From NCBI RefSeq assembly GCF_000737315.1, contig NZ_JMCB01000001.1, forward strand, positions 682,001-746,000: 64,000 nt of DNA, given 5' to 3'. Positions 1,697 to 24,159 of this stretch are shown here, piece after piece (position 1 is the stretch's first letter; the number at the start of each line of letters is the position of its first letter). The notes under the pieces are model-generated. The model worked only from the letters and a program-made list of their open reading frames with translations, did no database searches and had not been told where the DNA came from. Source of the stretch: Hyalangium minutum (lineage in GTDB: Bacteria; Myxococcota; Myxococcia; Myxococcales; Myxococcaceae). Made by a program: the position numbers and the translations under genes.

Positions 1697-2437
1697 CTAC
1701 CCCTTCCCCGTGCGAAGGTACTGGCTCACGTGCGCCTTGGCCCGGCGGGCAGCGGCTTCCACCGAGCGGCCTCGCCCCAGTTCCGCGGCCAGCGCCGAGG
1801 CCAACCTGCAACCCGTTCCCCGGCGCTCAGACGATCGCTGGACACGCTTGCCCGTGAGCAGCCGCGTCGTGCCCGGCGTGCACAGCACGTCCACGGCTCC
1901 GCGCTCGCGGTGGCCGCCCTTCACCAGGACCGCTCCGAAGCCACGCGCCACCAGCGTCCGCCCGGCCTCTGCGGCTTCCTCCACCGTCTCAACCGCTGGC
2001 AGCCCCAAGAGCCACGCGGCCTCGTCCAGGTTCGGCGTCAGGAGTACGCGCGGTCCTGCGAGCCCCAGGTAGTGCTTCACTGAGAGCTTCGAGAGCCGCT
2101 GCCCCCGCGACGTCCGCACCACGGGATCCACCACCCACCACGCCTCCACATCCTCCAGGGCCTCGCGGATCGCCGAGAGCCGCGCCGCATCCGGCACCAT
2201 GCCCAGCTTCACCGCGTGCAACGGCCCCAGCTCTCGCGCCGCGGCCACCTGGGCCTTCAGCACCCGCGCCGGAGCCGCCTGCCACAAGAACGTCGTGAGG
2301 CCCTGCGCCGTCTGCGCCGTGGGCACTGCTACCGGAGCGCCGCCCATCGCCCGCACTGCGGCCGCATCCGCCAGCAGCCCCGCACGGCCGGTGGGCTCAT
2401 GGCCCGCGAGCAGCAGGACTCGAGACACCCCACTCAC
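1697..2437 (-). CDS. thiD: Hydroxymethylpyrimidine/phosphomethylpyrimidine kinase
   Basis: AGHEPTGRAGLLAD, VKLGM, VVDPV, LTPNLDEA, VLVKGGH and RGTGC motifs of the ThiD ribokinase family. Confidence 0.85.
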   Translation of the reverse strand: MSGVSRVLLLAGHEPTGRAGLLADAAAVRAMGGAPVAVPTAQTAQGLTTFLWQAAPARVLKAQVAAARELGPLHAVKLGMVPDAARLSAIREALEDVEAWWVVDPVVRTSRGQRLSKLSVKHYLGLAGPRVLLTPNLDEAAWLLGLPAVETVEEAAEAGRTLVARGFGAVLVKGGHRERGAVDVLCTPGTTRLLTGKRVQRSSERRGTGCRLASALAAELGRGRSVEAAARRAKAHVSQYLRTGKG

Positions 2438-3201
2438 CGCCGGTAGTCACGCGCCTTGTGGATGAACACCTTGTACACCCCGCCGTGCACTGGCAGGGTC
2501 GTCAGCATGTACTCCGGGTGCCATTGCACGCCCAACGCGAAGGCATGCGCGGAGGACTCGATGGCCTCCGTCACCCCGTCCGAAGACACGGCGCTCGCCA
2601 CCACCTGGTTGCCCAGCGCCTTCACCGCCTGGTGGTGCGTCGAGTTCACCATCAGCTGCCCCTTCCCCACCGCCTCCGCCAACAGCGTGCCGTCCTTCAC
2701 GTCCACCGGGTGCTGCGGGTGCGTCCGGTCATGCTTCTGCTCGTGCTCCCGAGCCTCCGGCAGCTCGCGTCCGATGTCCTGGTACAGCGTGCCGCCCAGC
2801 ACCACGTTCAGCAGCTGCATGCCCCCGCAGATGCCCAGCACTGGCATGTTCCGCTTCAGCGCCGCGCGCATCAGCGCCGACTCGAAGGCCGTCCGCGCCT
2901 CCTTCATGGGACCCATGCCCTCGCGCGCCGTGTCGCCGTAGGCCACCGGGTTGATGTCGAACGCGCCTCCCGTGATCAGCACCCCGGACACGCGATCCAG
3001 GTACGCCTCCACGCACGTGGGGTCATCCGAGTACGGCAGCACGAACGGCAGCCCTCCCGCGCGCAGCACGGCCTCCGAGTACACCGCCTTCAGCTCGTAG
3101 CGGGCAAAGGGGTTGCCCTCGCCAGCCTCGGTCCAGTCCGGGGAGATGCCAATGTTGGGCCGCCGAGGCGGCTGGCCGTGATGTCTCAGAGGAGGAGTCA
3201 T
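2434..3201 (-). CDS. Gamma-glutamyl-gamma-aminobutyrate hydrolase family protein (peptidase C26, class I glutamine amidotransferase-like)
   Basis: LITGGAFD, GICGGMQ (nucleophile Cys), VNSTHHQAV, GVQWHPE (His/Glu of the triad). Confidence 0.85.
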   Translation of the reverse strand: MTPPLRHHGQPPRRPNIGISPDWTEAGEGNPFARYELKAVYSEAVLRAGGLPFVLPYSDDPTCVEAYLDRVSGVLITGGAFDINPVAYGDTAREGMGPMKEARTAFESALMRAALKRNMPVLGICGGMQLLNVVLGGTLYQDIGRELPEAREHEQKHDRTHPQHPVDVKDGTLLAEAVGKGQLMVNSTHHQAVKALGNQVVASAVSSDGVTEAIESSAHAFALGVQWHPEYMLTTLPVHGGVYKVFIHKARDYRR

Positions 3202-5780: not shown

Positions 5781-5925
5781 AAAGGCGCGCGGCGTATAGC
5801 CGGGCTCTTCCCTTCTGGCAACCCCCTAACCTTGAAAGCCCGGGGATTCCTGGCAGCCGAAAGTATTACGGCCAATGTGTACGGCCGTTCCTTGCCAAGG
5901 AGGGTTCGGCCCTTACGTTGTGACT

Positions 5926-8577
<2,652 letters not shown>

Positions 8578-8603: not shown

Positions 8604-8643
8604 GAGCGCCCCACCCCGCATGCCGGGATGGGGCGCTCTTTTT
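8604..8643 (+). terminator. Intrinsic terminator between convergent clpB and argR
   Basis: GAGCGCCCCA...TGGGGCGCTC stem followed by TTTTT. Confidence 0.75.
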
Positions 8644-9061
8644 ATGCGAGCCGCAGCAGCTGCTCGACCTGCTCCCGCACCTCGAGCAGCAGCTCCGGAT
8701 CCTTCACGGCGATGAAGATCGTGTCATCCCCCGCCACCGTGCCCGCCAGCCCGGGGATGGCCGCGGATCGATCCACCATCAGCGCCACCGCCTGCGCGTA
8801 GCCCGGCGATGTCTTCAGCACGAGCAGGTTCGGCGGCGCCTCGATCACAGTGATCGCCTGCGTGGGCGCGGCCGGCCCCGGCTCCACCCGCTGGTAGCGC
8901 CCGCCCACCTTCTGGATCGACAGCCGCTTCAGGTGCCGCGAGAGCGTGGACTGGCTCGGCGCGTGGCCCTCGGCCGCCAACAACCGCTGGAGCACCGCCT
9001 GATCGGTGATCTCGTTCGCCTCCAGCAACCTCACGATGGCCTCATCCAGCTGAAGATCCAC
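8642..9061 (-). CDS. argR: Arginine repressor (likely GTG start at 9061; ORF extends to 9088)
   Basis: QSTLSRHLKRL winged helix-turn-helix, LKTSPGYAQAVA, AGTVAGDDTIFI arginine-binding motif. GGAGG lies 7 nt upstream of GTG 9061. Confidence 0.92.
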   Translation of the reverse strand: MDLQLDEAIVRLLEANEITDQAVLQRLLAAEGHAPSQSTLSRHLKRLSIQKVGGRYQRVEPGPAAPTQAITVIEAPPNLLVLKTSPGYAQAVALMVDRSAAIPGLAGTVAGDDTIFIAVKDPELLLEVREQVEQLLRLA

Positions 9062-9077
9062 GCCCATCCCTCCACCA

Positions 9078-9101
9078 TGCATTTTCATGCATATGCATGC
9101 A
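9078..9101. promoter_or_regulatory. Two overlapping ARG-box-like palindromes upstream of argR
   Basis: TGCATTTTCATGCA (9078-9091) and TGCATATGCATGCA (9088-9101), both TGCAT-N4-ATGCA, matching the TGMAT-N4-ATKCA core. Confidence 0.65.
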
Positions 9102-9273: not shown

Positions 9274-10278
9274 ATGAGGCATCTCACCCGCATCCAGGAT
9301 CTGGGCCCCGAAGGCGTCGAGAAGATCCTCGCGCAGGCTGCGGCCTGGAAGCGCCAGGCCCCCGGCCCCATCTTCCAGAACCGCCTGCTGGGGATGGTGT
9401 TCTTCAACCCCTCGCTGCGCACGCGCACCTCGTTCGAGGCGGTGATGCTGCGCTCGGGTGGGCACGCCATCGTGCTGGATGTGGGCAACGGCGTGTGGAA
9501 GCTGGAGGACCGGGTGGGCGCGGTGATGAACGCGGACCGGGCCGAGCACATCAAGGAGGCGGCGCCGGTGCTGTCGCGCTTCGCGGACATGCTCGGGGTG
9601 CGCGCGTTCTCGCAGGGCGGCGGCGACGAGGAGGATGAGCAGGACTCGGTCATCAACTCCTTCCGCAAGCACGTCACCGTGCCGCTGGTGAGCATGGAGT
9701 CCGCGCGCGAGCACCCGTGCCAGGGCCTGGCGGACGCGCTGACGCTCCGGGAGAACTTCGGCTCCACCAAGAAGCTGCCGGTGACGCTCACGTGGGCGCC
9801 CCACATCAAGCCGCTGCCCAAGGCGGTGCCGAACTCGTTCCTGCTGACGGCGGCGGCCGCGGGCTGCGAGGTGCGCGTGGCCCACCCGCCGGGCTTCGAG
9901 CTGCATCCGAAGGTGCGCGCCGAGGCCGAGGCCTACGCAAAGGCCACCGGCGGCAGCGTCACGTACACCCACGATCAAGAGGAGGCGCTGGAGGGCAGCC
10001 GCGCCGTCTATGCCAAGGCCTGGGGCCCGGCCACTCGCGCGGGGCACGCCCCGGGGGATGTGGCGGCGCTGCTGGCGTCGTACTCGGGGTGGATGCCCAC
10101 CCGGCGCTCCATGTCCCTGGCCGCCAAGGACGCCATCTTCCTCCACTGCCTGCCGGTGAGGCGCAACGTCGAAGTGTCCGATGAGGTGTTGGATCACCCC
10201 TCCAGCCGTGTTGTGGATACGGCGGAGAACCGCTTCCACGTCCAGCGCTCCATTCTTCAGTGGATCCTGTCTACCTGA
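9274..10278 (+). CDS. argF': N-acyl-ornithine carbamoyltransferase (ArgF' family), predicted N-succinyl-preferring
   Basis: FFNPSLRTRTSF, WKLE, DRAEH, HPCQ, TLTWAPHIKPLP, HCLPVRRNVE and AENR are ArgF'-type, not classical OTCase. ATG at 9274. Confidence 0.88.
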   Translation: MRHLTRIQDLGPEGVEKILAQAAAWKRQAPGPIFQNRLLGMVFFNPSLRTRTSFEAVMLRSGGHAIVLDVGNGVWKLEDRVGAVMNADRAEHIKEAAPVLSRFADMLGVRAFSQGGGDEEDEQDSVINSFRKHVTVPLVSMESAREHPCQGLADALTLRENFGSTKKLPVTLTWAPHIKPLPKAVPNSFLLTAAAAGCEVRVAHPPGFELHPKVRAEAEAYAKATGGSVTYTHDQEEALEGSRAVYAKAWGPATRAGHAPGDVAALLASYSGWMPTRRSMSLAAKDAIFLHCLPVRRNVEVSDEVLDHPSSRVVDTAENRFHVQRSILQWILST

Positions 10279-10296: not shown

Positions 10297-11139
10297 TTGC
10301 CCTTCTCTCCCGATCCCTATGCCGCGCTTCGCAACGCCGCGCGCTACGTCCGGCAGTTCCGCCGGAAGACCTTCGTCCTCCTGGTCGACGGCCCGATGCT
10401 CGGGGATGCCCGGCTGCGGCGCGCGGTCTGCGAGCAGATCGCCCTGCTGTGGACCTTCTCCATCCAGCCCGTGGTGGTGCACGGCGCCGGCCCCGAGCTG
10501 AACACGCCCTTTGACGCCATGTCCGCCAAGGTCCGCATGGACCTGCTGGCCGACCTGCAGACAGCGGGTGTGCCGTGCGTGGGCCTGAGCGGCGTGGACG
10601 CGGGTCTGCTCAAGGCCCGGCGGCGCAACGGGGAGCCGGGCTCCGAGTCCTCCTGGGAGTCGAACAAGCCGAACAACTACAGCCTCGTGGGCGACATCGA
10701 GTCCGTGGACACGCGGCTGCTCCAGCACCTGCGCACCGGGGACTACGTTCCGGTGGTGGCGCCGCTGGCGGGTGATCCGTCTGGCACCGTGTACAACGCC
10801 AGCGCCGACACCGTGGCCGCCACGCTCGCGGTGGCCCTCGGCGCCGAGAAGCTCTTCTTCCTGCTGCCCACCCCGGGGCTCCTGCGCAAGCCGGAGGATC
10901 CCGCTTCGCTCGTGCCGCAGGCCACGCTCACGGACCTTGCCGCGCTGGAGCAGGAGGGCCAGATGTCCGACAGCACGGTCTCCAAGGTGCACGCCATCCG
11001 GTCCGCGCTGGTGGGCGGGGTGACGAGCGTCCACCTGGTGAGCGGCATGCTCCCGAACGCCATCCTCGAGGAGGTCTTCACCAACGAGGGCAGCGGCACC
11101 ATGGTGCTGCGCGAGGCTCCGGCTCGGGGTAACGGATGA
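10297..11139 (+). CDS. argB: Acetylglutamate kinase homolog with degenerate catalytic motifs (probable pseudokinase)
   Basis: AAK fold by overall similarity (YVRQFRRKTFV, VVVHG, LSGVDAG, VPVVAP, AEKL, EEVFTNEGSGT). K-x-GG is replaced by LVDG, the substrate loop is deleted and GGM is replaced by DST. Confidence 0.8.
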   Translation: MPFSPDPYAALRNAARYVRQFRRKTFVLLVDGPMLGDARLRRAVCEQIALLWTFSIQPVVVHGAGPELNTPFDAMSAKVRMDLLADLQTAGVPCVGLSGVDAGLLKARRRNGEPGSESSWESNKPNNYSLVGDIESVDTRLLQHLRTGDYVPVVAPLAGDPSGTVYNASADTVAATLAVALGAEKLFFLLPTPGLLRKPEDPASLVPQATLTDLAALEQEGQMSDSTVSKVHAIRSALVGGVTSVHLVSGMLPNAILEEVFTNEGSGTMVLREAPARGNG

Positions 11140-12203
11140 CGCCGTCCGCCCTGCTCGAGGCCTTGGTGGCCACCCCGAGCGTCTCCGGACAAGAGGGACG
11201 CATCGCTGATCAGGTGTCCACCTGGGCTGAGGGTTGGGGTGCGCGCGTGCAGCGCCAGGGCCACAACGTGTGGTTCTCGGTGGGCAGCGGGCCTCGGCGC
11301 CTGCTCGTCAACTCGCACCTGGACACGGTCCCCCCGTGCGCCGGGTGGACGCTGGAGCCGCAGGTGCCAGTGTGGCGCGAGGGCAAGCTGTACGGGCTGG
11401 GCAGCAATGACGCGAAGGGCTGTGTCACCGCCATGCTGCTGGCGGCCCGCGGCCTGCTGGAGAACCCGAGCGCCCTGGAGGGCCGGGGCGAGGTGGTGTT
11501 CGCCTTCACCGCCGAGGAGGAGACCGGCGGCAAGGGGCTGGGCACGGTGCTGTCCACGTTCGGGCCTCTGGACGCGGCCGTGGTGGGTGAGCCCACCAGC
11601 CTGAAGCCCTGCACCGCCCAGCGCGGGATGCTCCTGCTGAAGTGCGTGGCGCATGGGCGCTCGGCGCACGTGGCCCACGCGCAGACCGCGGACGCTCAGA
11701 ACGCCATCCACCTGGCCGCCCAGGACATCTCCACCCTGGCCGAGCTGCGCTTCCCGCCGCACCCGCTGCTGGGCGAGGCGCGGGCGCAAGTGACTCAGAT
11801 CCAGGGCGGGCTGGCGCGCAACCAGGTACCGGACCGCTGCGAGTTCTTCGTCGACATCCGCACCACGCCGGGCATGGAGCACTCGGCGGTGGCCACCCAC
11901 CTCGGGGGCGTGCTGCGCAGCGAGGTGGTGGTGCACTCCGCGCGCTACCTGCCGAAGGCCACTGCCTCCACCGAGCCCATCGTCCGCGCGGCCGTGGCGG
12001 CGTCGGGCGCCGGGCCGGTGGGCTCGAGCACCGCGTCGGACTGGGCCTTCCTGGGCAACCTGCCCGCGGTGAAGGTGGGCCCCGGCGACACCCTGCGCTC
12101 GCACAAGCCGGACGAGTACCTCGCCCTCACGGAGCTGGAGGCCGGTGTGGCCTTCTACCAGCAGCTCATCCGCGGCTACTTCCAGGAGGTGGCCCATGGC
12201 TAA
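11136..12203 (+). CDS. argE: M20 family acetylornithine/N-acylcitrulline deacylase
   Basis: NSHLDTV, GSNDAKG, AEEETGG, GEPT and HKPDEY metal ligands intact; position within the arg operon. Confidence 0.85.
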   Translation: MTPSALLEALVATPSVSGQEGRIADQVSTWAEGWGARVQRQGHNVWFSVGSGPRRLLVNSHLDTVPPCAGWTLEPQVPVWREGKLYGLGSNDAKGCVTAMLLAARGLLENPSALEGRGEVVFAFTAEEETGGKGLGTVLSTFGPLDAAVVGEPTSLKPCTAQRGMLLLKCVAHGRSAHVAHAQTADAQNAIHLAAQDISTLAELRFPPHPLLGEARAQVTQIQGGLARNQVPDRCEFFVDIRTTPGMEHSAVATHLGGVLRSEVVVHSARYLPKATASTEPIVRAAVAASGAGPVGSSTASDWAFLGNLPAVKVGPGDTLRSHKPDEYLALTELEAGVAFYQQLIRGYFQEVAHG

Positions 12204-13589: not shown

Positions 13590-14780
13590 ATGAACAAGAA
13601 ACACGTGGTGCTGGCCTTCTCCGGCGGTTTGGACACCTCTTTCTGCGTGGTCTATCTGCGCGAGCAGGGCCACACGGTCACCACCGTCACCGTGGACACC
13701 GGCGGCTTCAGCGCGGACGCGCTGGCGCGCATGCCGGAGCACGCCGCCCGCCTGGGCGCGGTGGCGCACCACACCATCGACGCGCGCTCGCTGCTCTTCG
13801 AGGACTACCTGCGCCACCTGCTCGCCGGCAATGTGCTGCGCGGCCAGGCCTACCCCCTGAGCGTCTCCGCCGAGCGCGTCTGCCAGGCCACCGAAGCGGT
13901 CCGCATGGCCCGCCAGGTGGGCGCTCAGGCCCTGGCCCACGGCTCCACCGGCGCGGGCAATGATCAGGTCCGCTTCGACGTGGCCTTCCGCGCCCTGGCC
14001 CCGGACCTGGAGCTCATCACCCCGATCCGCGAGCTGAGCCTCAGCCGCGCCCAGGAGATGTCCTTCCTGGCCGAGCGCGGCATCCACCTCCCGGCGAAGA
14101 CGGGCGCCTATTCGGTGAACGAGGGCATGTGGGGCACCTCCGTCGGCGGCAAGGAGACGCACGACTCCTGGAGCACCCTGCCCGAGGCCGCCTACCCCGC
14201 GGGCGTCATCCCGGCCGATCTCAAGCCGCGCACGCTGGTGCTCAGCTTCGAGAAGGGCCGCCCGGTGGCCCTCGACGGCAAGGCGATGGATCCCGTGGCG
14301 CTGATCGCCGAGCTGAACGCGGTGGGCCAGCCCTACGGCGTGGGCCGTGGCGTGCACCTGGGTGACACCATCCTGGGCATCAAGGGCCGCGTGGGCTTCG
14401 ACGCTCCCGCGGCCATCATGCTCATCACCGCGCACCGCGAGCTGGAGAAGCTGGTGCTGTCCGGCAAGCAGCTCTTCTGGAAGGAGACGCTGGGCAACCT
14501 CTACGGCTCGCTGCTGCACGAGGGGCACTTCTTCGATCCGCTCGCGCGCGACTTGGAGGGGTTCCTGACGTCCTCGCAGGCGCAGGTGACGGGCGAGGTG
14601 CGGCTGACGCTGCAGCCGCGCGCCCTCGTGGTGGAGGGCGTGCGCTCGAAGCACTCGTTGATGGACGCGAAGGTGGCCAGCTACGGCGAGGCGAACCACT
14701 TGTGGACCGGCGCGGAAGCCGCGGGCTTCGCGAAGGTGTACGGCGTTGCTCAGACCCTGGCCCTGAAGGTGAAGTCATGA
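13590..14780 (+). CDS. argG: Argininosuccinate synthase
   Basis: LAFSGGLDTS PP-loop, HGSTGAGNDQVRF, ILGIKGR; ATG 13590. Confidence 0.95.
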   Translation: MNKKHVVLAFSGGLDTSFCVVYLREQGHTVTTVTVDTGGFSADALARMPEHAARLGAVAHHTIDARSLLFEDYLRHLLAGNVLRGQAYPLSVSAERVCQATEAVRMARQVGAQALAHGSTGAGNDQVRFDVAFRALAPDLELITPIRELSLSRAQEMSFLAERGIHLPAKTGAYSVNEGMWGTSVGGKETHDSWSTLPEAAYPAGVIPADLKPRTLVLSFEKGRPVALDGKAMDPVALIAELNAVGQPYGVGRGVHLGDTILGIKGRVGFDAPAAIMLITAHRELEKLVLSGKQLFWKETLGNLYGSLLHEGHFFDPLARDLEGFLTSSQAQVTGEVRLTLQPRALVVEGVRSKHSLMDAKVASYGEANHLWTGAEAAGFAKVYGVAQTLALKVKS

Positions 14781-15835
14781 AAGTCCACATCGATAAGATT
14801 GGCAGTGTCACCCGGAACCTGCGGCTGGGCCGGACCGTCCACCTCACCTCGGACATCCAGGCGGTGGAGGGCGCGGTGATCGCCGCGCGCATCCACGGGG
14901 AGAAGTCCACCTACAACCAGCTCGAGGACGTCCACGGCCGCATGGTGACGCTGCACGGCGGTGACATCGTCGTCGGCGCGCTGGGCCACCGCAACGCGCT
15001 GCACGGCTACGAGGGCGTGGTGCCGGAGAAGGTGGTGGCGGGCCAGAAGCTCCACATCCTGAACATGGGCGGCGTGATTGGCCAGTGCACCTCGCACAAC
15101 CCGGGGGTGGGCACGCCCTTCGAGGCCGAGGTGCTGGGCCAGGTGCTCATGTTCCCCGAGTTCCAGTCGCGCGCCGGTCAGCCGGCCCACGTCCGGGCCG
15201 GGGCGCTCAAGGGCTCGTCGCAGCCGGTGAAGGTGCCGGTGGTGTACGTGGTGGGCACCTGCATGAACGCGGGCAAGACGTACGCCGCGTGCGCCATCGT
15301 GCGCCAGCTGCATCAGGCCGGCTACCGCGTGGGCGGCGCCAAGCTCACCGGCGTGTCGCTGATGCGCGACACGCTGAGCATGCGGGACTCGGGCGCGGAG
15401 GTGGTGATGGACTTCACCGACGCGGGCACCGTGTGCACCAGCCCGAAGACGGCGGCGCAGGTGTCGCGCGTCATCCTCTCCGAGCTGGCCGCCGCGGACG
15501 TGGACGTCGTCGTCGCGGAGACGGGCGATGGCATCATGGGCGAGTACGGCGTGCAGTCCATCCTCGAGGACTCGGCGCTGCGCGAGCTGGGCGCCGCCTG
15601 GGTGCTGTGCGCGAATGATCCCGTGGGAGCCGCCGGTGGCGTGCGCCACATGAAGGAGACCTACGGCATCCAGGTGGATGTGGTGGCCGGGCCCGCTACG
15701 GACAACCGGGTGGGCATCCGCTTCGTGGAGCGTGAAGTGGGGCTGCCCGCCCACAACGCCCGTGCGGACGCCGCCGGCCTGGGCGGACTCATCGTCGAGA
15801 AGGTTGCACCGCGTATCGCGGGGAGGAAGAGCTGA
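14777..15835 (+). CDS. DUF1611-like P-loop protein, candidate N-acyltransferase replacing ArgA
   Basis: ATG 14777 overlaps the argG stop (ATGA). GTCMNAGKT P-loop-like motif, KLTG, MDFTDAG and ETGDG match the DUF1611 long subfamily as I recall it. Confidence 0.7.
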   Translation: MKVHIDKIGSVTRNLRLGRTVHLTSDIQAVEGAVIAARIHGEKSTYNQLEDVHGRMVTLHGGDIVVGALGHRNALHGYEGVVPEKVVAGQKLHILNMGGVIGQCTSHNPGVGTPFEAEVLGQVLMFPEFQSRAGQPAHVRAGALKGSSQPVKVPVVYVVGTCMNAGKTYAACAIVRQLHQAGYRVGGAKLTGVSLMRDTLSMRDSGAEVVMDFTDAGTVCTSPKTAAQVSRVILSELAAADVDVVVAETGDGIMGEYGVQSILEDSALRELGAAWVLCANDPVGAAGGVRHMKETYGIQVDVVAGPATDNRVGIRFVEREVGLPAHNARADAAGLGGLIVEKVAPRIAGRKS

Positions 15836-16905
15836 TGAACAAGGTGCACGCATACATCCTGGGTGCCGCCGGTTTCCCCGGTGGCGACCTGCTGCGGCTG
15901 CTGTCGGGACACCCGGCGGTGGCGGCGGTGCGCGCGGTGTCCCAGCCCCACGGGGACATGCCCTTCTACAAGGTGCACCCGCACCTGCGCGGGCTCGTCG
16001 AGGGCAAGTTCGACGCGGCGCCGGACTGGCGCTGGCTCACGGACTCTCCGCAGCCGGTGGTCTTCTCCGCGCTGGAGGAGGAGGAGCTCGCCCGGCAGCT
16101 GCCCGCCCTGGAGAAGCAGTGGGCGGAGCTGGGGCTCTCGGAGCGGCTCATCCTGGTGGACCTGTCCCCGGACTTCCGGCTGGACCACCCCGGGCGCTAC
16201 GCCGCCACGCATGGCCGCCCTCACCCGTCTCCGGATCTACTGGAGAAGTTCGTGTACGGCCTGCCCGAGTGGCGCCGCGACAAGCTGAAGGGCGCCAAGC
16301 GCATCGCCAACCCGGGGTGCTTCGCCACGGCCGTGCAGCTCGCGCTGCTGCCGGTGGCGTCCACGCCGGGGCTGGGGATGATCGCCGCCTCGGCGGTGAC
16401 GGGCTCCTCGGGCTCGGGCGCGCTGCCGGGCGAGGTGACGCACCACCCCACCCGCGCGCATGACTTCCGCGCCTACAAGCCGCTGGAGCACCCGCAGGAG
16501 GCGGAGATCGACGTGATGCTCGTGGCGCACAAGGCCGTGCGCCACCGGCTCACCTTCGTGCCGCACTCGGCGCCGCTGGTGCGCGGCATCTTCGCCACCA
16601 TCCAGTTCGAGTGGCCGGAGAACGGTGGCGGTGTGAGCACGAACTCGCTGACCGAGGTGTACCGCCGCTACTACGCCACCTCGCCCATGGTGCGCGTGGT
16701 GGAGGGCACGCCGCGGCTGGCCTCGGTGGTGGGCAGCAACTTCGCTGATATCTCCGTGGCCACGCGTGGGCGCACGGTGGCCGTCATGGTGGCGCTCGAC
16801 AACCTGGTGAAGGGACTGGCCGGACAAGCCGTGCAGTCCCTCAACGTGGCGCTCGGCCTGCCCGAGGACACCGCCCTGCGCCAGGCCGCGTGCTTCCCCT
16901 GCTGA
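15835..16905 (+). CDS. argC: N-acetyl-gamma-glutamyl-phosphate reductase homolog with degenerate nucleotide-binding motifs
   Basis: IANPGCF catalytic Cys, DLSxDFRL, TGSSGSG and LDNLVKG present. Rossmann loop reads GAAGFPGGD, ALPHG reads ALEEE, H-x-H reads HPQ. Confidence 0.82.
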   Translation: MNKVHAYILGAAGFPGGDLLRLLSGHPAVAAVRAVSQPHGDMPFYKVHPHLRGLVEGKFDAAPDWRWLTDSPQPVVFSALEEEELARQLPALEKQWAELGLSERLILVDLSPDFRLDHPGRYAATHGRPHPSPDLLEKFVYGLPEWRRDKLKGAKRIANPGCFATAVQLALLPVASTPGLGMIAASAVTGSSGSGALPGEVTHHPTRAHDFRAYKPLEHPQEAEIDVMLVAHKAVRHRLTFVPHSAPLVRGIFATIQFEWPENGGGVSTNSLTEVYRRYYATSPMVRVVEGTPRLASVVGSNFADISVATRGRTVAVMVALDNLVKGLAGQAVQSLNVALGLPEDTALRQAACFPC

Positions 16906-17628: not shown

Positions 17629-18969
17629 ATGAAGCACATGTCTACCGGCTGGGAGCATCATTTCTGCCTGCCTCCGGGGACACGAGTGCAGGACTGGCTC
17701 GTGGAGAGTTGCCACGGCCACGGTGCCTTTGGCGTCGTCTATCGCGCCGTCCGTATCGGCCACGAGTCCGATGGTCCCGTGGCCCTCAAGATGGCCCTCT
17801 TCCCCTGGGATCCCCGCTTCATGAGGGAGGTGGCGCTGCTGTCGCTCGTCCACCACCCCAGCGTGCCGCGCCTGCTCGGCCATGGCTTCTGGCGCCGTCC
17901 CCAAGGCACCTTCTTCCCCTTCATCGTCATGCAATGGGTGGAGGGCACGCCCCTCTATGAATGGGCGCGTCAGCACCGTCCCTCCCCTGCTCAGGTGGCA
18001 CTGCTGCTCTCTCAGTTGGCCCGCGCGCTCGAGGCCACCCACGACTGCAGAGCGGTCCACCGCGACGTCAAAGGGGACAATGTCGTGGTGAGGCACTCGG
18101 ACGGCCGCGCCATGCTCATGGACTTCGGCGCCGGTCACTACCAGTCCGCCGCACGGCTGACCTTCCAACCGCTGCCTCCTGGCACTCCTCCCTATCAATC
18201 TCCCCAGGCGGCGCAGTTCGAGCGGAACGCAGAGAACCACCCCGGCGCCCGGTACCTCGCCGGGCCCGCAGACGATGTGTTCGCCCTGGGTGTCACCGCC
18301 CATCGGCTCCTGACCGGTGACTATCCCTTCTCACTCGAGCCTCCTTTGGATGGGGTGCCATCAGCGCTCCGAGCGCTGATCGTGCGCATGCTCTCGCTGT
18401 CTCCCGAGGCGCGCGGCCCGGCGGGCGAACTGGCCGAAGCACTCGAAGCCTTCGCAGCGCAGGAGAAGATGCCACTTCCGCCGGAGAGTTCCACCCGCTC
18501 CCGTTCACGGCATCAACGCCGCGTGTGGAGGGCCGGAGGTGTGGGGGCTTTCGTGAGCTTGCTGCTGGCGCTGGGGGCCTGGCAATTCACGCACTCGCGC
18601 TCCCCTCAGGCCTCGCTTACCACCCAAGCCGTGGACACGGACCGGCCGGACGCGGACACCACCGGTGTGGCGGAAGCGGCTTCGAAGACAACCGAGGCCT
18701 CCGCTCCACCGCCTCGCCAGCCAGAGGCGATCCACCAGGACCCGAACGCCGAGCCATTGCCGGGACAGTTACGGCCCACCGAGCGAGGCCAATGCCCGGG
18801 GGGAAAGCAGGTCCCCATCAACGGAGGATGCTGGGTGGAGGTCCCCTCGAAAGATGCCGCAGAGTGCGAGGCCAATGGGTTGGTCTTCATCCAGGGCCGC
18901 TGCTACGCCCGGGCGTTTGGCCACCGCCGCAAAAATCCGCCCACCTCCGCTCCTGCGGACTCCCGGTAG
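17629..18969 (+). CDS. Ser/Thr protein kinase, myxobacterial type with a TM helix and a Cys-rich C-terminal domain
   Basis: GHGAFGVVY, VALK, HRDVKGDN, DFG and PGTPPY motifs; TM segment VGAFVSLLLALGAW; RGQCPGG...GGCW...C...GRCY tail. Confidence 0.88.
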   Translation: MKHMSTGWEHHFCLPPGTRVQDWLVESCHGHGAFGVVYRAVRIGHESDGPVALKMALFPWDPRFMREVALLSLVHHPSVPRLLGHGFWRRPQGTFFPFIVMQWVEGTPLYEWARQHRPSPAQVALLLSQLARALEATHDCRAVHRDVKGDNVVVRHSDGRAMLMDFGAGHYQSAARLTFQPLPPGTPPYQSPQAAQFERNAENHPGARYLAGPADDVFALGVTAHRLLTGDYPFSLEPPLDGVPSALRALIVRMLSLSPEARGPAGELAEALEAFAAQEKMPLPPESSTRSRSRHQRRVWRAGGVGAFVSLLLALGAWQFTHSRSPQASLTTQAVDTDRPDADTTGVAEAASKTTEASAPPPRQPEAIHQDPNAEPLPGQLRPTERGQCPGGKQVPINGGCWVEVPSKDAAECEANGLVFIQGRCYARAFGHRRKNPPTSAPADSR

Positions 18970-21629: not shown

Positions 21630-22672
21630 CCCAGCAGTCCCAGGAAGCACTCTTTCGACGGGCGGCGCTTGGCGGGCCGGTCCGGCACGCCTCCCGTGTT
21701 GCGGTCGCGATCCACCGCATCCAGCGCCTCACCGGCGGGAGTGTCCGGCTCCTGGTAGTCGTCCTCCTCGCCGCGGTAGCTCATGAAGAAGCCGCTCTCA
21801 TCAATAGGGCTGTAGCCCACGAAGACGCGCGCGAAGTCCGACGCATCCCGCCCCGCCGAGCGGTCGTTGTTGTCGAACACCTTCCTCACCCCGTAGTAGT
21901 AGGCCGGGTTCTCGCCGCACGGCACATCCGGCTGCTCGGGCCGCAGGGGGCACTGGCCGCTCACGTCCGTGTCGGCGAAGGCGAAGTCTCCCAGGAGGAT
22001 GGCATAGCGGCCCTTGCACTCGCCGTTGATGGCCCGCCCCGAAGCGCACGCCTTCATGTCCCGCAGCACCGCGTGCTGCTCCTTGAAGAAGCCCGAGTCC
22101 CCCTCCAGGAAGGTGGTGGTCAGCGAGGGCAGCGTCTGCAGGCGTGCGTTCGCGGTGCACGACACGCCGCCCACGTTCTCGTAGACGCCATCGAGCACGC
22201 TGTCCGTGGCATTCCCCAAGTCCGGGGTGGTATCCCCCTGGTTCCAGTCGCCCTGCTGAGGCACCATCAAAATGGGGCGCAGGCTGCGGGGCACGTCGAA
22301 CTCCACCCGGTCGTCCACCTCGCACTGCACCTCCAGGCTGTCGATGCGCGTGAAGACGTGGGTGATGCTCGAGCTGTTGTTGCTGGAGCGGCGCCCGTCA
22401 AAGTCGCGGTAGCGAGCGTTGGCATCGCGCGTCACGGCCGGAGCAATGTTGGGGAACATGGAGAAGTCCCCAATCTTGTCCTCGTTGGGCATCATCTTGT
22501 GCACCCGGAGGGCGGTGGCGTCCCACAGCGGGGAGACAGCCGCCTCATGCACGCGCAGGGACAGGTAGCCCACCTCGGCGAAGTGGATGCCGAACGCCAC
22601 CACGGTGACGAAGATCATGAGGCCCAGCACCATCTCCGCCATGGCCTGGCCGCGCCGCCTCGAGGCTCGCAT
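21623..22672 (-). CDS. TadE-like minor pilin
   Basis: ATG 22672 (TGATG overlap); RGQ-AMAEMVLGLMIFV prepilin motif with E+5. Confidence 0.75.
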   Translation of the reverse strand: MRASRRRGQAMAEMVLGLMIFVTVVAFGIHFAEVGYLSLRVHEAAVSPLWDATALRVHKMMPNEDKIGDFSMFPNIAPAVTRDANARYRDFDGRRSSNNSSSITHVFTRIDSLEVQCEVDDRVEFDVPRSLRPILMVPQQGDWNQGDTTPDLGNATDSVLDGVYENVGGVSCTANARLQTLPSLTTTFLEGDSGFFKEQHAVLRDMKACASGRAINGECKGRYAILLGDFAFADTDVSGQCPLRPEQPDVPCGENPAYYYGVRKVFDNNDRSAGRDASDFARVFVGYSPIDESGFFMSYRGEEDDYQEPDTPAGEALDAVDRDRNTGGVPDRPAKRRPSKECFLGLLGC

Positions 22673-24159
22673 CAGTGCACCCCCTTGTAGCCGGCGCGGA
22701 CGAGCTCGCTGAAGGCCTCGGCCGCCACCCCGCCCACCGTGTTGGGCACGTCCGTTCCGCCGCGCAACAGCTTGCCGCCGATGTCCGCGTCCGCGGGGAC
22801 CAGGGTGGCGCGCCAGAACGGGTTCCACAGGTTGGGCGGCTCGTCCCAGTGGCCGCGCCGGTGGTAGTAGGCCAGCCCGGTGGCCAGCGCCTGCTGCACG
22901 CTGATGTCCGTGCCGTTCGCCAGGTGCCAGCCATGGTTGTCGAACTCGCTGGCCTTGCCCGGCGTGAAGCTGAAGGTGAACTGCAGGTACCAGGGCTCGG
23001 ATCGCAGCCCCCGCTGCTTGTAGTCCCGCTGCACGAGCGCGAAGAGCTTGGGCTGCGCCCAGAGGTTGTTCGCCGTATCGTCCGCGGTGTTGTACGTGAA
23101 GCCGCCGAAGAAGGTGGACGGCTGGTCCTCGGGCCTCACGTACATCAGCGTGTGCCGGAACTGTTTCTCCATGCCAGGATCCGCCACGCCAAGCATCGGG
23201 CCTCCGGGCGTCCACCAGTGGTCGTCGGAGTTGTCCAGCTTGTCCGTGGACTTCACGCCCGCGGTGGCATTCACGACGAAGGGCGCACAGCCCGGGAAGG
23301 TGATCTCCACCTCGGCGTGATCCTCGGCCCAGGTGTAGTGGGGCAGGTCCGCGCGCCCCCCGTGCCCCAGCTTGTCGCCCCAGTAGGCACTGCCTCCCTG
23401 GTTGATGACGCGCAGCCGGGCGCCTGCGGTGGTCAGCCGGCCGAGCACCCCGCCGTCGCCGCCGGTGAACGCGGGCATCCCCTGGCGGCGGGTGATGAAC
23501 TCGTAGCCTCGGGTGGCCATGGCCATGTCCAGGGAGAAGTCCTCGCCTCCCGCGATGGCATGGTTCAGCTCCGCGAGCGACACCGCCGTGGGGCCCGCGT
23601 GCAGCTCGTTCGGCCAGGCGCTGCCCTCGGAGGCCAGCTTCGCGTACTGCTGGGCGAAGGACTTCGGCCCGCCTGACACCGACTCCTGGAGCTGCTCGAC
23701 GAACTTGCCCTGCAGGTAGGCCATGTAATAGCCCAGCACCTGGATGTTGTAGGCCTGCACACCCGCCAGCGCGTCGTGCTTGTTCCACTTCTCCTGGATC
23801 TCCGCATTCAGCTCGTCCAGCGGCTGGAGGACGGCGGCGGCGGCCTGGCAGTTGTTGGCGGCCATGCGAGCGGCATTGAGGTTGGCGCGCGTGACGCTGG
23901 TCCAGCTGATGAGGCTCTGCACACCCGACATGGCCACCAGGTGGGCCGTCTGGGCGCGCCGCATGAGGGCGATGCTGTTGAAGGTGCGCGCGGTGGCCAC
24001 CGCGTTGCTGTAGGCGGCCAGGTCCGCCACGCTCTGGGCCTCCAGCTTCTCGCGCACCTTCATGGAGAACGCGAGCGTCAGGGTCACCATCAACGTGAGG
24101 AACAGCAGCGTCAGGCTGAAGAGCACCAGCGTCTGGCCGCGAGGACTGGACCGGCTCAC
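22672..24159 (-). CDS. TadG-like (Tad domain) pilus tip protein
   Basis: RGQ-TLVLFSLTLL...KLEAQSVADLAAYSNAVATAR, the typical Tad N-terminal domain. Confidence 0.78.
   Translation of the reverse strand: MSRSSPRGQTLVLFSLTLLFLTLMVTLTLAFSMKVREKLEAQSVADLAAYSNAVATARTFNSIALMRRAQTAHLVAMSGVQSLISWTSVTRANLNAARMAANNCQAAAAVLQPLDELNAEIQEKWNKHDALAGVQAYNIQVLGYYMAYLQGKFVEQLQESVSGGPKSFAQQYAKLASEGSAWPNELHAGPTAVSLAELNHAIAGGEDFSLDMAMATRGYEFITRRQGMPAFTGGDGGVLGRLTTAGARLRVINQGGSAYWGDKLGHGGRADLPHYTWAEDHAEVEITFPGCAPFVVNATAGVKSTDKLDNSDDHWWTPGGPMLGVADPGMEKQFRHTLMYVRPEDQPSTFFGGFTYNTADDTANNLWAQPKLFALVQRDYKQRGLRSEPWYLQFTFSFTPGKASEFDNHGWHLANGTDISVQQALATGLAYYHRRGHWDEPPNLWNPFWRATLVPADADIGGKLLRGGTDVPNTVGGVAAEAFSELVRAGYKGVH

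Follow-up and report, generated by a model that had tools for sequence, protein, structure and literature searches.

A probable pseudokinase descended from N-acetylglutamate kinase retains the arginine-site signature in the arginine operon of Hyalangium minutum

A stretch of 64,000 nucleotides from the genome of Hyalangium minutum (contig NZ_JMCB01000001.1, positions 682,001 to 746,000 of the forward strand; the whole stretch is referred to here as the window, with coordinates counted from its first nucleotide) was found to carry an operon for arginine biosynthesis. The argB position of this operon is occupied by an open reading frame (ORF) whose product, referred to here as ArgB*, is an orthologue of the N-acetylglutamate kinase (NAGK) ArgB with a degenerate active centre. 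Its description as a pseudokinase keeping the arginine site is well supported by sequence comparison. The operon has the gene order argF'-argB-argE-argH-argG-X-argC, with argR divergent from it, and the features on which the following account relies are:

8642..9088, minus strand: argR, divergent from the operon, with Pfam Arg_repressor domains
9274..10278, plus strand: argF', N-acetylornithine carbamoyltransferase type (NCBIfam NF003384, 440 bits against a cut-off of 288)
10297..11139, plus strand: ArgB*, ArgB orthologue with a degenerate active centre and probable pseudokinase, 280 aa (ORF with translation, Pfam AA_kinase)
11136..12203, plus strand: argE-like M20 deacylase, its start overlapping the ArgB* stop
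14777..15835, plus strand: X, a conserved protein with a beta-rich N-domain and a SIMIBI/BioD-like P-loop domain (GTCMNAGKT), between argG and argC
15835..16905, plus strand: argC orthologue, in which two universal histidines are lost, only in the Hyalangium/Stigmatella clade

The ORF of ArgB* begins with a TTG start codon, with the sequence GAGG 7 nt to its 5' side. The product was identified as a member of the Pfam family AA_kinase (PF00696, 88 bits), placing it within the amino-acid-kinase (AAK) fold. Scores against the NCBIfam model for ArgB (TIGR00761) were 126 bits for ArgB* and 112.8 bits for its Stigmatella orthologue, both below the cut-off of 151.3, while canonical orthologues scored 207-213 bits. 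The closest named relatives of ArgB* among the best 120 homologues were from Hyalangium spp., with 85-89% identity. Proteins of this short form (270-284 aa) were found in Hyalangium, Stigmatella and related metagenome-assembled genomes (MAGs) of Myxococcaceae/Archangiaceae, together referred to here as the variant clade, and include the orthologue of S. aurantiaca DW4/3-1 (ADO73631.1), which is annotated as acetylglutamate kinase.

ArgB* was aligned with solved NAGKs, with the canonical orthologues nearest to it and with ArgB of Escherichia coli (taken from the K-12 genome), and elements serving catalysis and substrate binding proved to be altered or missing at five places:

10375..10392, plus strand: degenerate beta1-alphaA phosphate loop, VLLVDG against canonical VVKLGG, with E. 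coli K8 replaced by L29 and G10 by D31
10477..10491, plus strand: VHGAG replacing VHGGG (HGGG being E. coli G43-G45), with G44 replaced by A64
10516..10521, plus strand: deletion junction A74/M75, at which 25 residues are lost, these being the hairpin that binds N-acetylglutamate and holds the Arg66 equivalent
10795..10809, plus strand: NASAD replacing NTNAD, with E. coli N160 replaced by S169 and the D162 equivalent present as D171
10969..10986, plus strand: DSTVSK replacing GGMxPK, with GGM gone and the K217 equivalent present as K230

The KxGG loop reads LxDG in ArgB* (L29, D31, G32), and both changes, K29L and G31D, are fixed in 10/10 members of the variant clade. At the other sites the relatives of ArgB* differ among themselves, the HGGG loop reading HG[AST]G or HSAS, the NxNAD motif reading [NS]ASAD (with N167, at the position of N158, being Ser in some relatives) and the GGM position reading DST, PAV, AAL, GAL or GPL across close relatives. 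The 25-residue segment that is absent from ArgB* corresponds to LHLPVEKVAGRRVTSAPVLDAAKMV in Myxococcus and includes GRRVT with the equivalent of E. coli Arg66. Six of the twelve signature positions scored (K/GG/HGGG/R/N/N/D/GM/K) are altered in ArgB*, in addition to the deletion of the Arg66 hairpin, while the full signature was intact in 110 of 110 canonical homologues of one search and is likewise retained by the canonical sister clades. As the same changes were found in 10 independent assemblies of the variant clade, they are due neither to chance nor to an assembly error. The combined loss of these elements indicates that ArgB* is very probably without kinase activity.

The elements of the arginine site were found to have a different fate. 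Constrained columns were defined for this comparison as the 143 alignment columns that are (nearly) invariant in 48 active orthologues, and two segments of ArgB* proved to keep them completely:

10318..10368, plus strand: N-terminal helix, residues 8-24 (YAALRNAARYVRQFRRK), with the aromatic residues Y17 and F21 (helix at residues 9-21 of the AlphaFold2 model)
11068..11103, plus strand: C-terminal arginine-site motif EEVFTNEGSGTM, with E259, G265 and G267 and all constrained columns kept

The N-helix sequence YVRQFRRK is intact in ArgB*, with 10/10 constrained columns of the helix kept across the clade, and Y17 aligns with Y15 of the Thermotoga maritima NAGK. Residues E259, G265 and G267, together with K185 (the Lys of an AEKL motif), are invariant in all variant and canonical orthologues; in the T. 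maritima structure the equivalent of K185 belongs to the arginine site as well. The spacing of the E-x5-G-x-G motif in ArgB* equals that of E280/G286/G288 in the N-acetylglutamate synthase-kinase (NAGS-K) of Xanthomonas campestris, and F21 corresponds, as judged by offset, to F35 of that protein (PMC2566978). Mutation of X. campestris E280, G286 or G288 abolishes the arginine effect (PMC2566978). The arginine pocket is known to lie between the N-helix, the sheet of the C-lobe, helix H and the loop that follows it (PMC3329491).

An AlphaFold2 (AF2) model of ArgB* (predicted local distance difference test score, pLDDT, of 77; predicted template modelling score of 0.81) contains both the fold and the N-helix, with confidence being low only at the deletion junction (pLDDT < 50, residues 66-69) and in the lid loop. 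Foldseek placed the model closest to arginine-sensitive NAGKs (template modelling score, TM, of ~0.8), followed by the AAK domain of the N-acetylglutamate synthase (NAGS) of Neisseria gonorrhoeae (TM 0.77). These features suggest that ArgB* is likely to bind arginine still, and that it probably still oligomerises.

A sequence-only reading of this DNA, made before the present analysis, had reported the motifs VLLVDG, VHGAG, NASAD and DSTVSK, the absent hairpin, the retention of the Asp and Lys of the last two motifs, and an intact N-helix and C-terminal motif. All of these were correct, with D171 and K230 present in the alignments and the two arginine-site segments invariant in the clade. That reading had further proposed that the catalytic and substrate sites were lost while the allosteric site was kept, with which every comparative test run agrees, including two that it had suggested, namely the inspection of related genera (10/10 clade assemblies with the same changes) and the superposition of a predicted structure on NAGK and NAGS.

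The relationship of ArgB* to active kinases was examined by comparing operons. The genes follow one another in the same order in Myxococcus, Hyalangium and Stigmatella. A canonical ArgB of 308 aa occupies the identical operon slot in Myxococcus, Corallococcus, Pyxidicoccus and Citreicoccus, and canonical forms were also found in the same slot, between argF' and argE, in Holophagaceae/Geothrix and in one gammaproteobacterial MAG. With 61% identity to the ArgB of Myxococcus, ArgB* is, on sequence and position, the positional orthologue of a canonical kinase of the arginine-sensitive type. Since canonical forms occur in the sister clade as well as in Holophagaceae/Geothrix and the gammaproteobacterial MAG, the variant state is the derived one, and the catalytic parts were most likely lost in the ancestor that Hyalangium and Stigmatella share.

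Selection was assessed in 10 variant, 26 canonical myxococcal and 22 holophagal operons, with omega estimated pairwise by the method of Nei and Gojobori (NG86). Within the variant set, omega was 0.25 for ArgB* and 0.18-0.23 for six neighbour genes, with a value of 0.235 for active ArgB within the canonical myxococcal set. The ArgB* gene is under purifying selection. Between the variant and canonical myxococcal sets the non-synonymous distance (dN) was 0.257 for ArgB and 0.15-0.20 for its neighbours, and the ratio of the variant-to-outgroup distance over the canonical-to-outgroup distance was 1.24 for ArgB and 0.97-1.08 for the other operon genes. Of the 143 constrained columns, 105 were kept and 38 (26.6%) lost in the variant set, with 14-15 deleted and 23-24 substituted; the corresponding loss in six neighbour genes was 1.9-10.6%. 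The lost columns are located in the beta1-alphaA loop, HGGG, the hairpin, the lid loop (111-113, 126-131), NxNAD, position 192 and GGMxP.

Mean pairwise identities within the variant and canonical sets followed the same division, being 0.38 and 0.86 for the lid loop, 0.56 and 0.80 for GGMxxK, and 0.77 and 0.96 for HGxG. The N-helix (0.93) and the C-terminal arginine segment (0.94) of the variant set stand at the level of active kinases. A C-terminal motif decaying like the catalytic residues had been named beforehand as the outcome that would speak against the retention of an arginine site; the values within the clade were instead 0.94 for this motif and 0.38-0.77 for the catalytic segments. 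The possibility that ArgB* is a pseudogene was ruled out by the omega value and by its reading frame, which is unbroken in 10 or more species with identities of 70-100%.

Comparison of ArgB* to known systems revealed both similarities and differences. The arginine-sensitive hexameric NAGKs (T. maritima 2bty, Pseudomonas aeruginosa 2buf, Synechococcus elongatus 2jj4, Mycobacterium tuberculosis 2ap9/7nlf) share with it the AAK fold, the N-helix with its arginine-stacking Tyr, the E-x5-G-x-G motif, the AEKL Lys and a place in an arg operon. Unlike these kinases, ArgB* is without the catalytic Lys, KxGG, HGGG, the Arg66 hairpin, N160 and GGM, and falls below the TIGR00761 cut-off. Classical ArgA (E. 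coli; N. gonorrhoeae 2r8v/3d2p) has an AAK domain that is, like ArgB*, a module of kinase-dead type with arginine site and N-helix retained, and the same classes of motif have decayed in both (Lys, HGGG, NxNAD, GGMxxK). In E. coli this domain has Met for the Lys, LGG, YGAR for HGGG, NLTSE for NxNAD and no K217, and keeps LLQELFSRDGIGT. However, classical ArgA carries a fused C-terminal GNAT domain, whereas ArgB* is a stand-alone protein with residue 280 as its last, the next gene encoding the M20 deacylase; moreover, the hairpin region that is deleted in ArgB* is kept by ArgA. Identity of ArgB* to the ArgA domain is 23%, against 61% to the ArgB of Myxococcus, pointing to an independent and recent origin from an ArgB. 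Assignment of ArgB* as a classical ArgA was ruled out by the missing GNAT domain and by scores against ArgA models of 109.5 (cut-off 344) and 104 (cut-off 202.85).

On these sequence data the resemblance between ArgB* and the AAK domain of ArgA is convergent. The likeness that the sequence-only reading had drawn between the two thus holds as a common type of decay and a similar fold (TM 0.77), and does not hold as kinship. Its statement that the ArgA domain lacks the Lys was borne out by the Met of E. coli, while the DG/PG and HGA/HGS that it placed at the same sites are not what E. coli has (LGG and YGAR).

A further parallel is provided by yeast, in which NAGK stabilises and co-regulates NAGS (PMC3329491). 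In this metabolon a protein of the AAK family regulates and stabilises the synthase in trans in an arginine-dependent manner (PMC3329491), which makes it a precedent for ArgB*. The yeast NAGK differs in still being an active kinase and in having an extra DUF619 domain. The putative synthase X of the present operon is furthermore unrelated to GNAT synthases, and an interaction between ArgB* and X is conjectural.

Copies of gene X from Myxococcota, Holophagae, Gammaproteobacteria and Verrucomicrobiota MAGs were found to share 65-70% identity and to lie invariably in the order argG-X-argC, in which the stop codon of one gene often overlaps the start codon of the next. Further copies were located at 14551-15612 of locus L001, 10001-11065 of L083, 10001-11089 of L084 and 5669-6736 of L095. 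The cluster of L095 (argR-argG-X-argC-argD-argF'-argB-argE-argH) covers all arginine steps except N-acetylglutamate synthase, with X as its sole non-assigned gene. By elimination, since every other step is covered there, the best candidate for this missing enzyme is X. Its AF2 model (pLDDT 91.5) matched FtsY/Ffh, BioD, HypB and MeaB in Foldseek. Membership of X in DUF1611/DgcN proper was considered and is not supported, as the Pfam match was below threshold and covered 46 residues, the N-domain is beta-rich and no structure labelled DUF1611 was among the top 50 Foldseek matches; the only label kept for X, which rests on its predicted structure, is that of a SIMIBI/BioD-like P-loop enzyme. One relative of X is named 'D-glutamate N-acetyltransferase-like' in UniRef, and D-glutamate N-acetyltransferase is an enzyme class established in the literature. 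No literature linking DUF1611 to arginine was found.

In a linear arginine pathway the synthase is the step controlled by arginine. In X itself no arginine module can be recognised, and the accompanying ArgBs are all of the arginine-sensitive type. Because of these three points a complex of ArgB and X, in which ArgB would supply the sensing of arginine, is an attractive conjecture. It was also observed that canonical ArgBs of the X-bearing operon type (Myxococcus, Geothrix) read VQVPG or LSVPG in place of the usual LSDVSG, so that the Ser/Thr-Asp before xxG (E. coli S180-D181; residues 190-194 of the window protein) is absent even in these kinases. The whole ArgB subfamily accompanying X is therefore somewhat atypical. 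As a separate observation on operon distribution, a 603-kb contig labelled 'Comamonas sp. KCTC 72670' (BNCN01000006.1, locus L013) carries an arg operon of the Myxococcus type with the same order and identities at the level of Myxococcus, and this assembly is probably mislabelled or contaminated.

The ArgC of the operon was found to be its second most altered gene product, with 10.6% of constrained columns lost and a relative rate of 1.08. H82 and G83 are both replaced by Glu (16075-16083), changing ALGHGEL to [AV]L[ED][ED]EEL and removing the His of the PHG/AHE loop. H221 is replaced by Gln (16495-16497), changing EHQHEAE to EH[PQ]QEAE and removing the second His of an HxH motif that reads HRH in the ArgC of E. 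coli, Thermus and Arabidopsis. In the structure paper on M. tuberculosis ArgC, this second His is reported to act as the general base. The same losses were found at loci L002-L009 and L083. The catalytic Cys is kept in the variant clade, and omega is ~0.21. In M. tuberculosis ArgC, the first His of HxH and a nearby Tyr stabilise the acyl-enzyme intermediate (PMC8220418), and His217 is the only ArgC histidine with a role described there (PMC8220418).

A second ArgB was sought with canonical ArgBs as tblastn queries, and none was found in the 64-kb window. Likewise, none was found in the 10-kb flanks of ten loci, and no ArgB paralogue from Hyalangium or Stigmatella, down to 49% identity, was present among the best 120 homologues. 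The remaining genes of the operon are intact and under constraint, so that the pathway is in use and needs either N-acetylglutamyl phosphate or a bypass. ArgB and ArgC are consecutive enzymes that lost conserved active-site residues in one lineage, therefore both steps have perhaps been taken over or bypassed, and the sequence changes suggest this for the kinase and reductase steps in the Hyalangium/Stigmatella lineage. No literature on arginine auxotrophy of Hyalangium or Stigmatella was found. The other genes assigned around the operon were identified as ordinary neighbours with no bearing on ArgB*:

2434-3201: peptidase C26 / class-I glutamine amidotransferase
5875-8577: clpB, upstream of the operon
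17629-18969: Ser/Thr protein kinase, downstream of argC
22672-24159: TadE/G-like pilus protein

Scanning of 50%-identity representatives for full-length ArgB-like proteins without the catalytic Lys revealed a second degenerate clade, comprising nine 90% clusters from uncultured Myxococcales MAGs (P0276, P0411-P0418). These proteins have Q for K, [ED]G for GG and HG[FP]G for HGGG, their NxNAD is degenerate, and the arginine-site residues Y/Y/K/E/G/G are kept. In two or more distinct MAG lineages the gene lies directly downstream of argR and forms an argR-AAK pair with it (L088 7433-8909; L089; L093 9420-10909; L094 1160-2649) with conserved flanks (an ompA-like gene and cinA), and no other arg genes were found within 8-10 kb of these loci. 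The clade shares only 38% identity with ArgB*, is nearest to other canonical ArgBs and is of independent origin, and unlike ArgB* its members are of full length, possess the hairpin Arg, lie outside any arg operon and pass TIGR00761 (165 bits). Catalysis was therefore apparently lost with retention of the arginine site at least twice. Three further full-length ArgB-like proteins, each a single metagenome sequence (P0302, P0307 and P0399 at L090-L092), have T, R or H for the Lys, with other signature residues gone, and lie on contigs of too little length to show their gene neighbourhood.

On balance we lean towards the explanation that ArgB* is a dead NAGK descendant kept as a non-catalytic subunit for arginine sensing or scaffolding, most likely for X. 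The operon's own arginine-sensitive NAGK has lost its catalytic Lys, the two phosphate loops rich in glycine, the hairpin and the nucleotide loop GGM, while purifying selection has kept the AAK fold, the N-helix and the arginine pocket (Y17, F21, K185, E259, G265, G267). The N-helix of arginine-sensitive kinases interlaces dimers into hexamers. ArgB* would still bind arginine, would probably still form oligomers and would act without catalysis. Another pathway enzyme would then receive the arginine signal from it as its partner, in the way in which the AAK domain of classical ArgA acts in cis and yeast NAGK acts in trans towards NAGS. The best partner candidate would be X, filling the only empty step of the operon, with the kinase reaction, and possibly that of the reductase too, being supplied elsewhere in the genome or bypassed. 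A role as a stand-alone arginine-sensing subunit, as the sequence-only reading had suggested, is what we infer from this pattern.

Several observations weigh against this explanation. The kinase that the pathway needs was not found in the operon or in the 10-kb flanks, and the retention of D171 and K230 means that residual or altered phosphotransfer chemistry remains conceivable. Both would fit an ArgB* that is still the NAG kinase, with other residues or a partner protein replacing the lost parts, which would also be in line with purifying selection, with ArgB* being the sole argB-like gene of operon and window, and with an otherwise intact pathway for which no other kinase was seen in the window, the flanks or the best 120 homologues. 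We consider such activity improbable, as the loss takes in the Lys, both Gly loops, the Arg66 hairpin and GGM at once, each of them kept in 110/110 canonical homologues, and as the replaced positions (G44, GGM) vary among close relatives, unlike an active site. The change of ArgC in the same lineage may also indicate a rewiring larger than a switch from kinase to sensor. As for the partner, the relative-rate comparison showed no lineage-specific acceleration of X in the variant clade, and the same X is present in genomes with canonical ArgB, leaving a specific interaction of ArgB* with X a conjecture. The non-catalytic subunit could instead form mixed hexamers with a canonical NAGK paralogue, associate with ArgC or act with ArgR. 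The invariant hexamer-mediating N-helix, the altered ArgC of the same operon and the independent degenerate clade encoded directly downstream of argR would accord with such partners, to which we assign a minor likelihood; no paralogue of at least ~50% identity from Hyalangium or Stigmatella was among the best 120 matches, and the divergent argR next to the operon in the window is the usual arrangement, common to canonical clusters.

Recruitment of ArgB* to a different ligand, as an enzyme or binding protein with a repurposed 'arginine site', is again unlikely. It would accord with the stem branch, which was accelerated before purifying selection set in again, and with the new residues fixed in the clade (D31, R80, A168, S169, T192), but clade members differ at the remodelled positions of the pocket, which speaks against a new active site, and the gene still belongs to the arginine operon, with translational linkage to argE. 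That ArgB* is a functionless decaying relic could be argued from the lost catalytic residues and from the name 'amino acid kinase family protein', which is all that the Prokaryotic Genome Annotation Pipeline (PGAP) gives to some orthologues. This is effectively refuted by the selection analysis, with omega like that of functional neighbours, an intact frame throughout the species compared, most constrained columns kept, and an invariant N-helix and C-terminal motif.

A bolder joint reading can be put forward tentatively, and taken whole it is rather doubtful. Under it, steps 2 and 3 would no longer be catalysed by the operon's ArgB and ArgC in Hyalangium and Stigmatella. ArgB* would be the arginine-sensing subunit of a non-homologous P-loop first enzyme, X, the pair forming a split convergent analogue of ArgA. 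The semialdehyde might come from an unrecognised kinase/reductase pair or from a bypass, for example by acetylation of glutamate semialdehyde from the proline route. Pseudokinases derived from ArgB and binding arginine might then be a recurrent regulatory device in Myxococcota, with at least two origins.

New here are the loss of two histidines from ArgC in the same lineage, the second, independent clade of degenerate ArgBs, and X as a candidate NAGS. To our knowledge no free-standing pseudoenzyme derived from ArgB has been known before, and no paper joining acetylglutamate kinase with pseudokinase or pseudoenzyme was among the literature results listed. Databases name the gene acetylglutamate kinase, including in the model myxobacterium S. 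aurantiaca DW4/3-1; if the enzyme is dead, pathway reconstructions for these genomes would contain an error at step 2, and perhaps a further one at step 3. Attention is also drawn to the first step of this widespread operon type, for which X is the candidate enzyme, and to the source of the kinase and reductase activities. ArgB* and its canonical orthologue, with 61% identity and a place in the same operon, constitute a clean natural pair with which the catalysis of NAGK could be told apart from arginine sensing and scaffolding. ArgB* may be a protein of recent origin that corresponds, as a free-standing unit, to ArgA's regulatory domain and, if this is true, would represent a recent and datable replay of the event thought to have yielded that domain.

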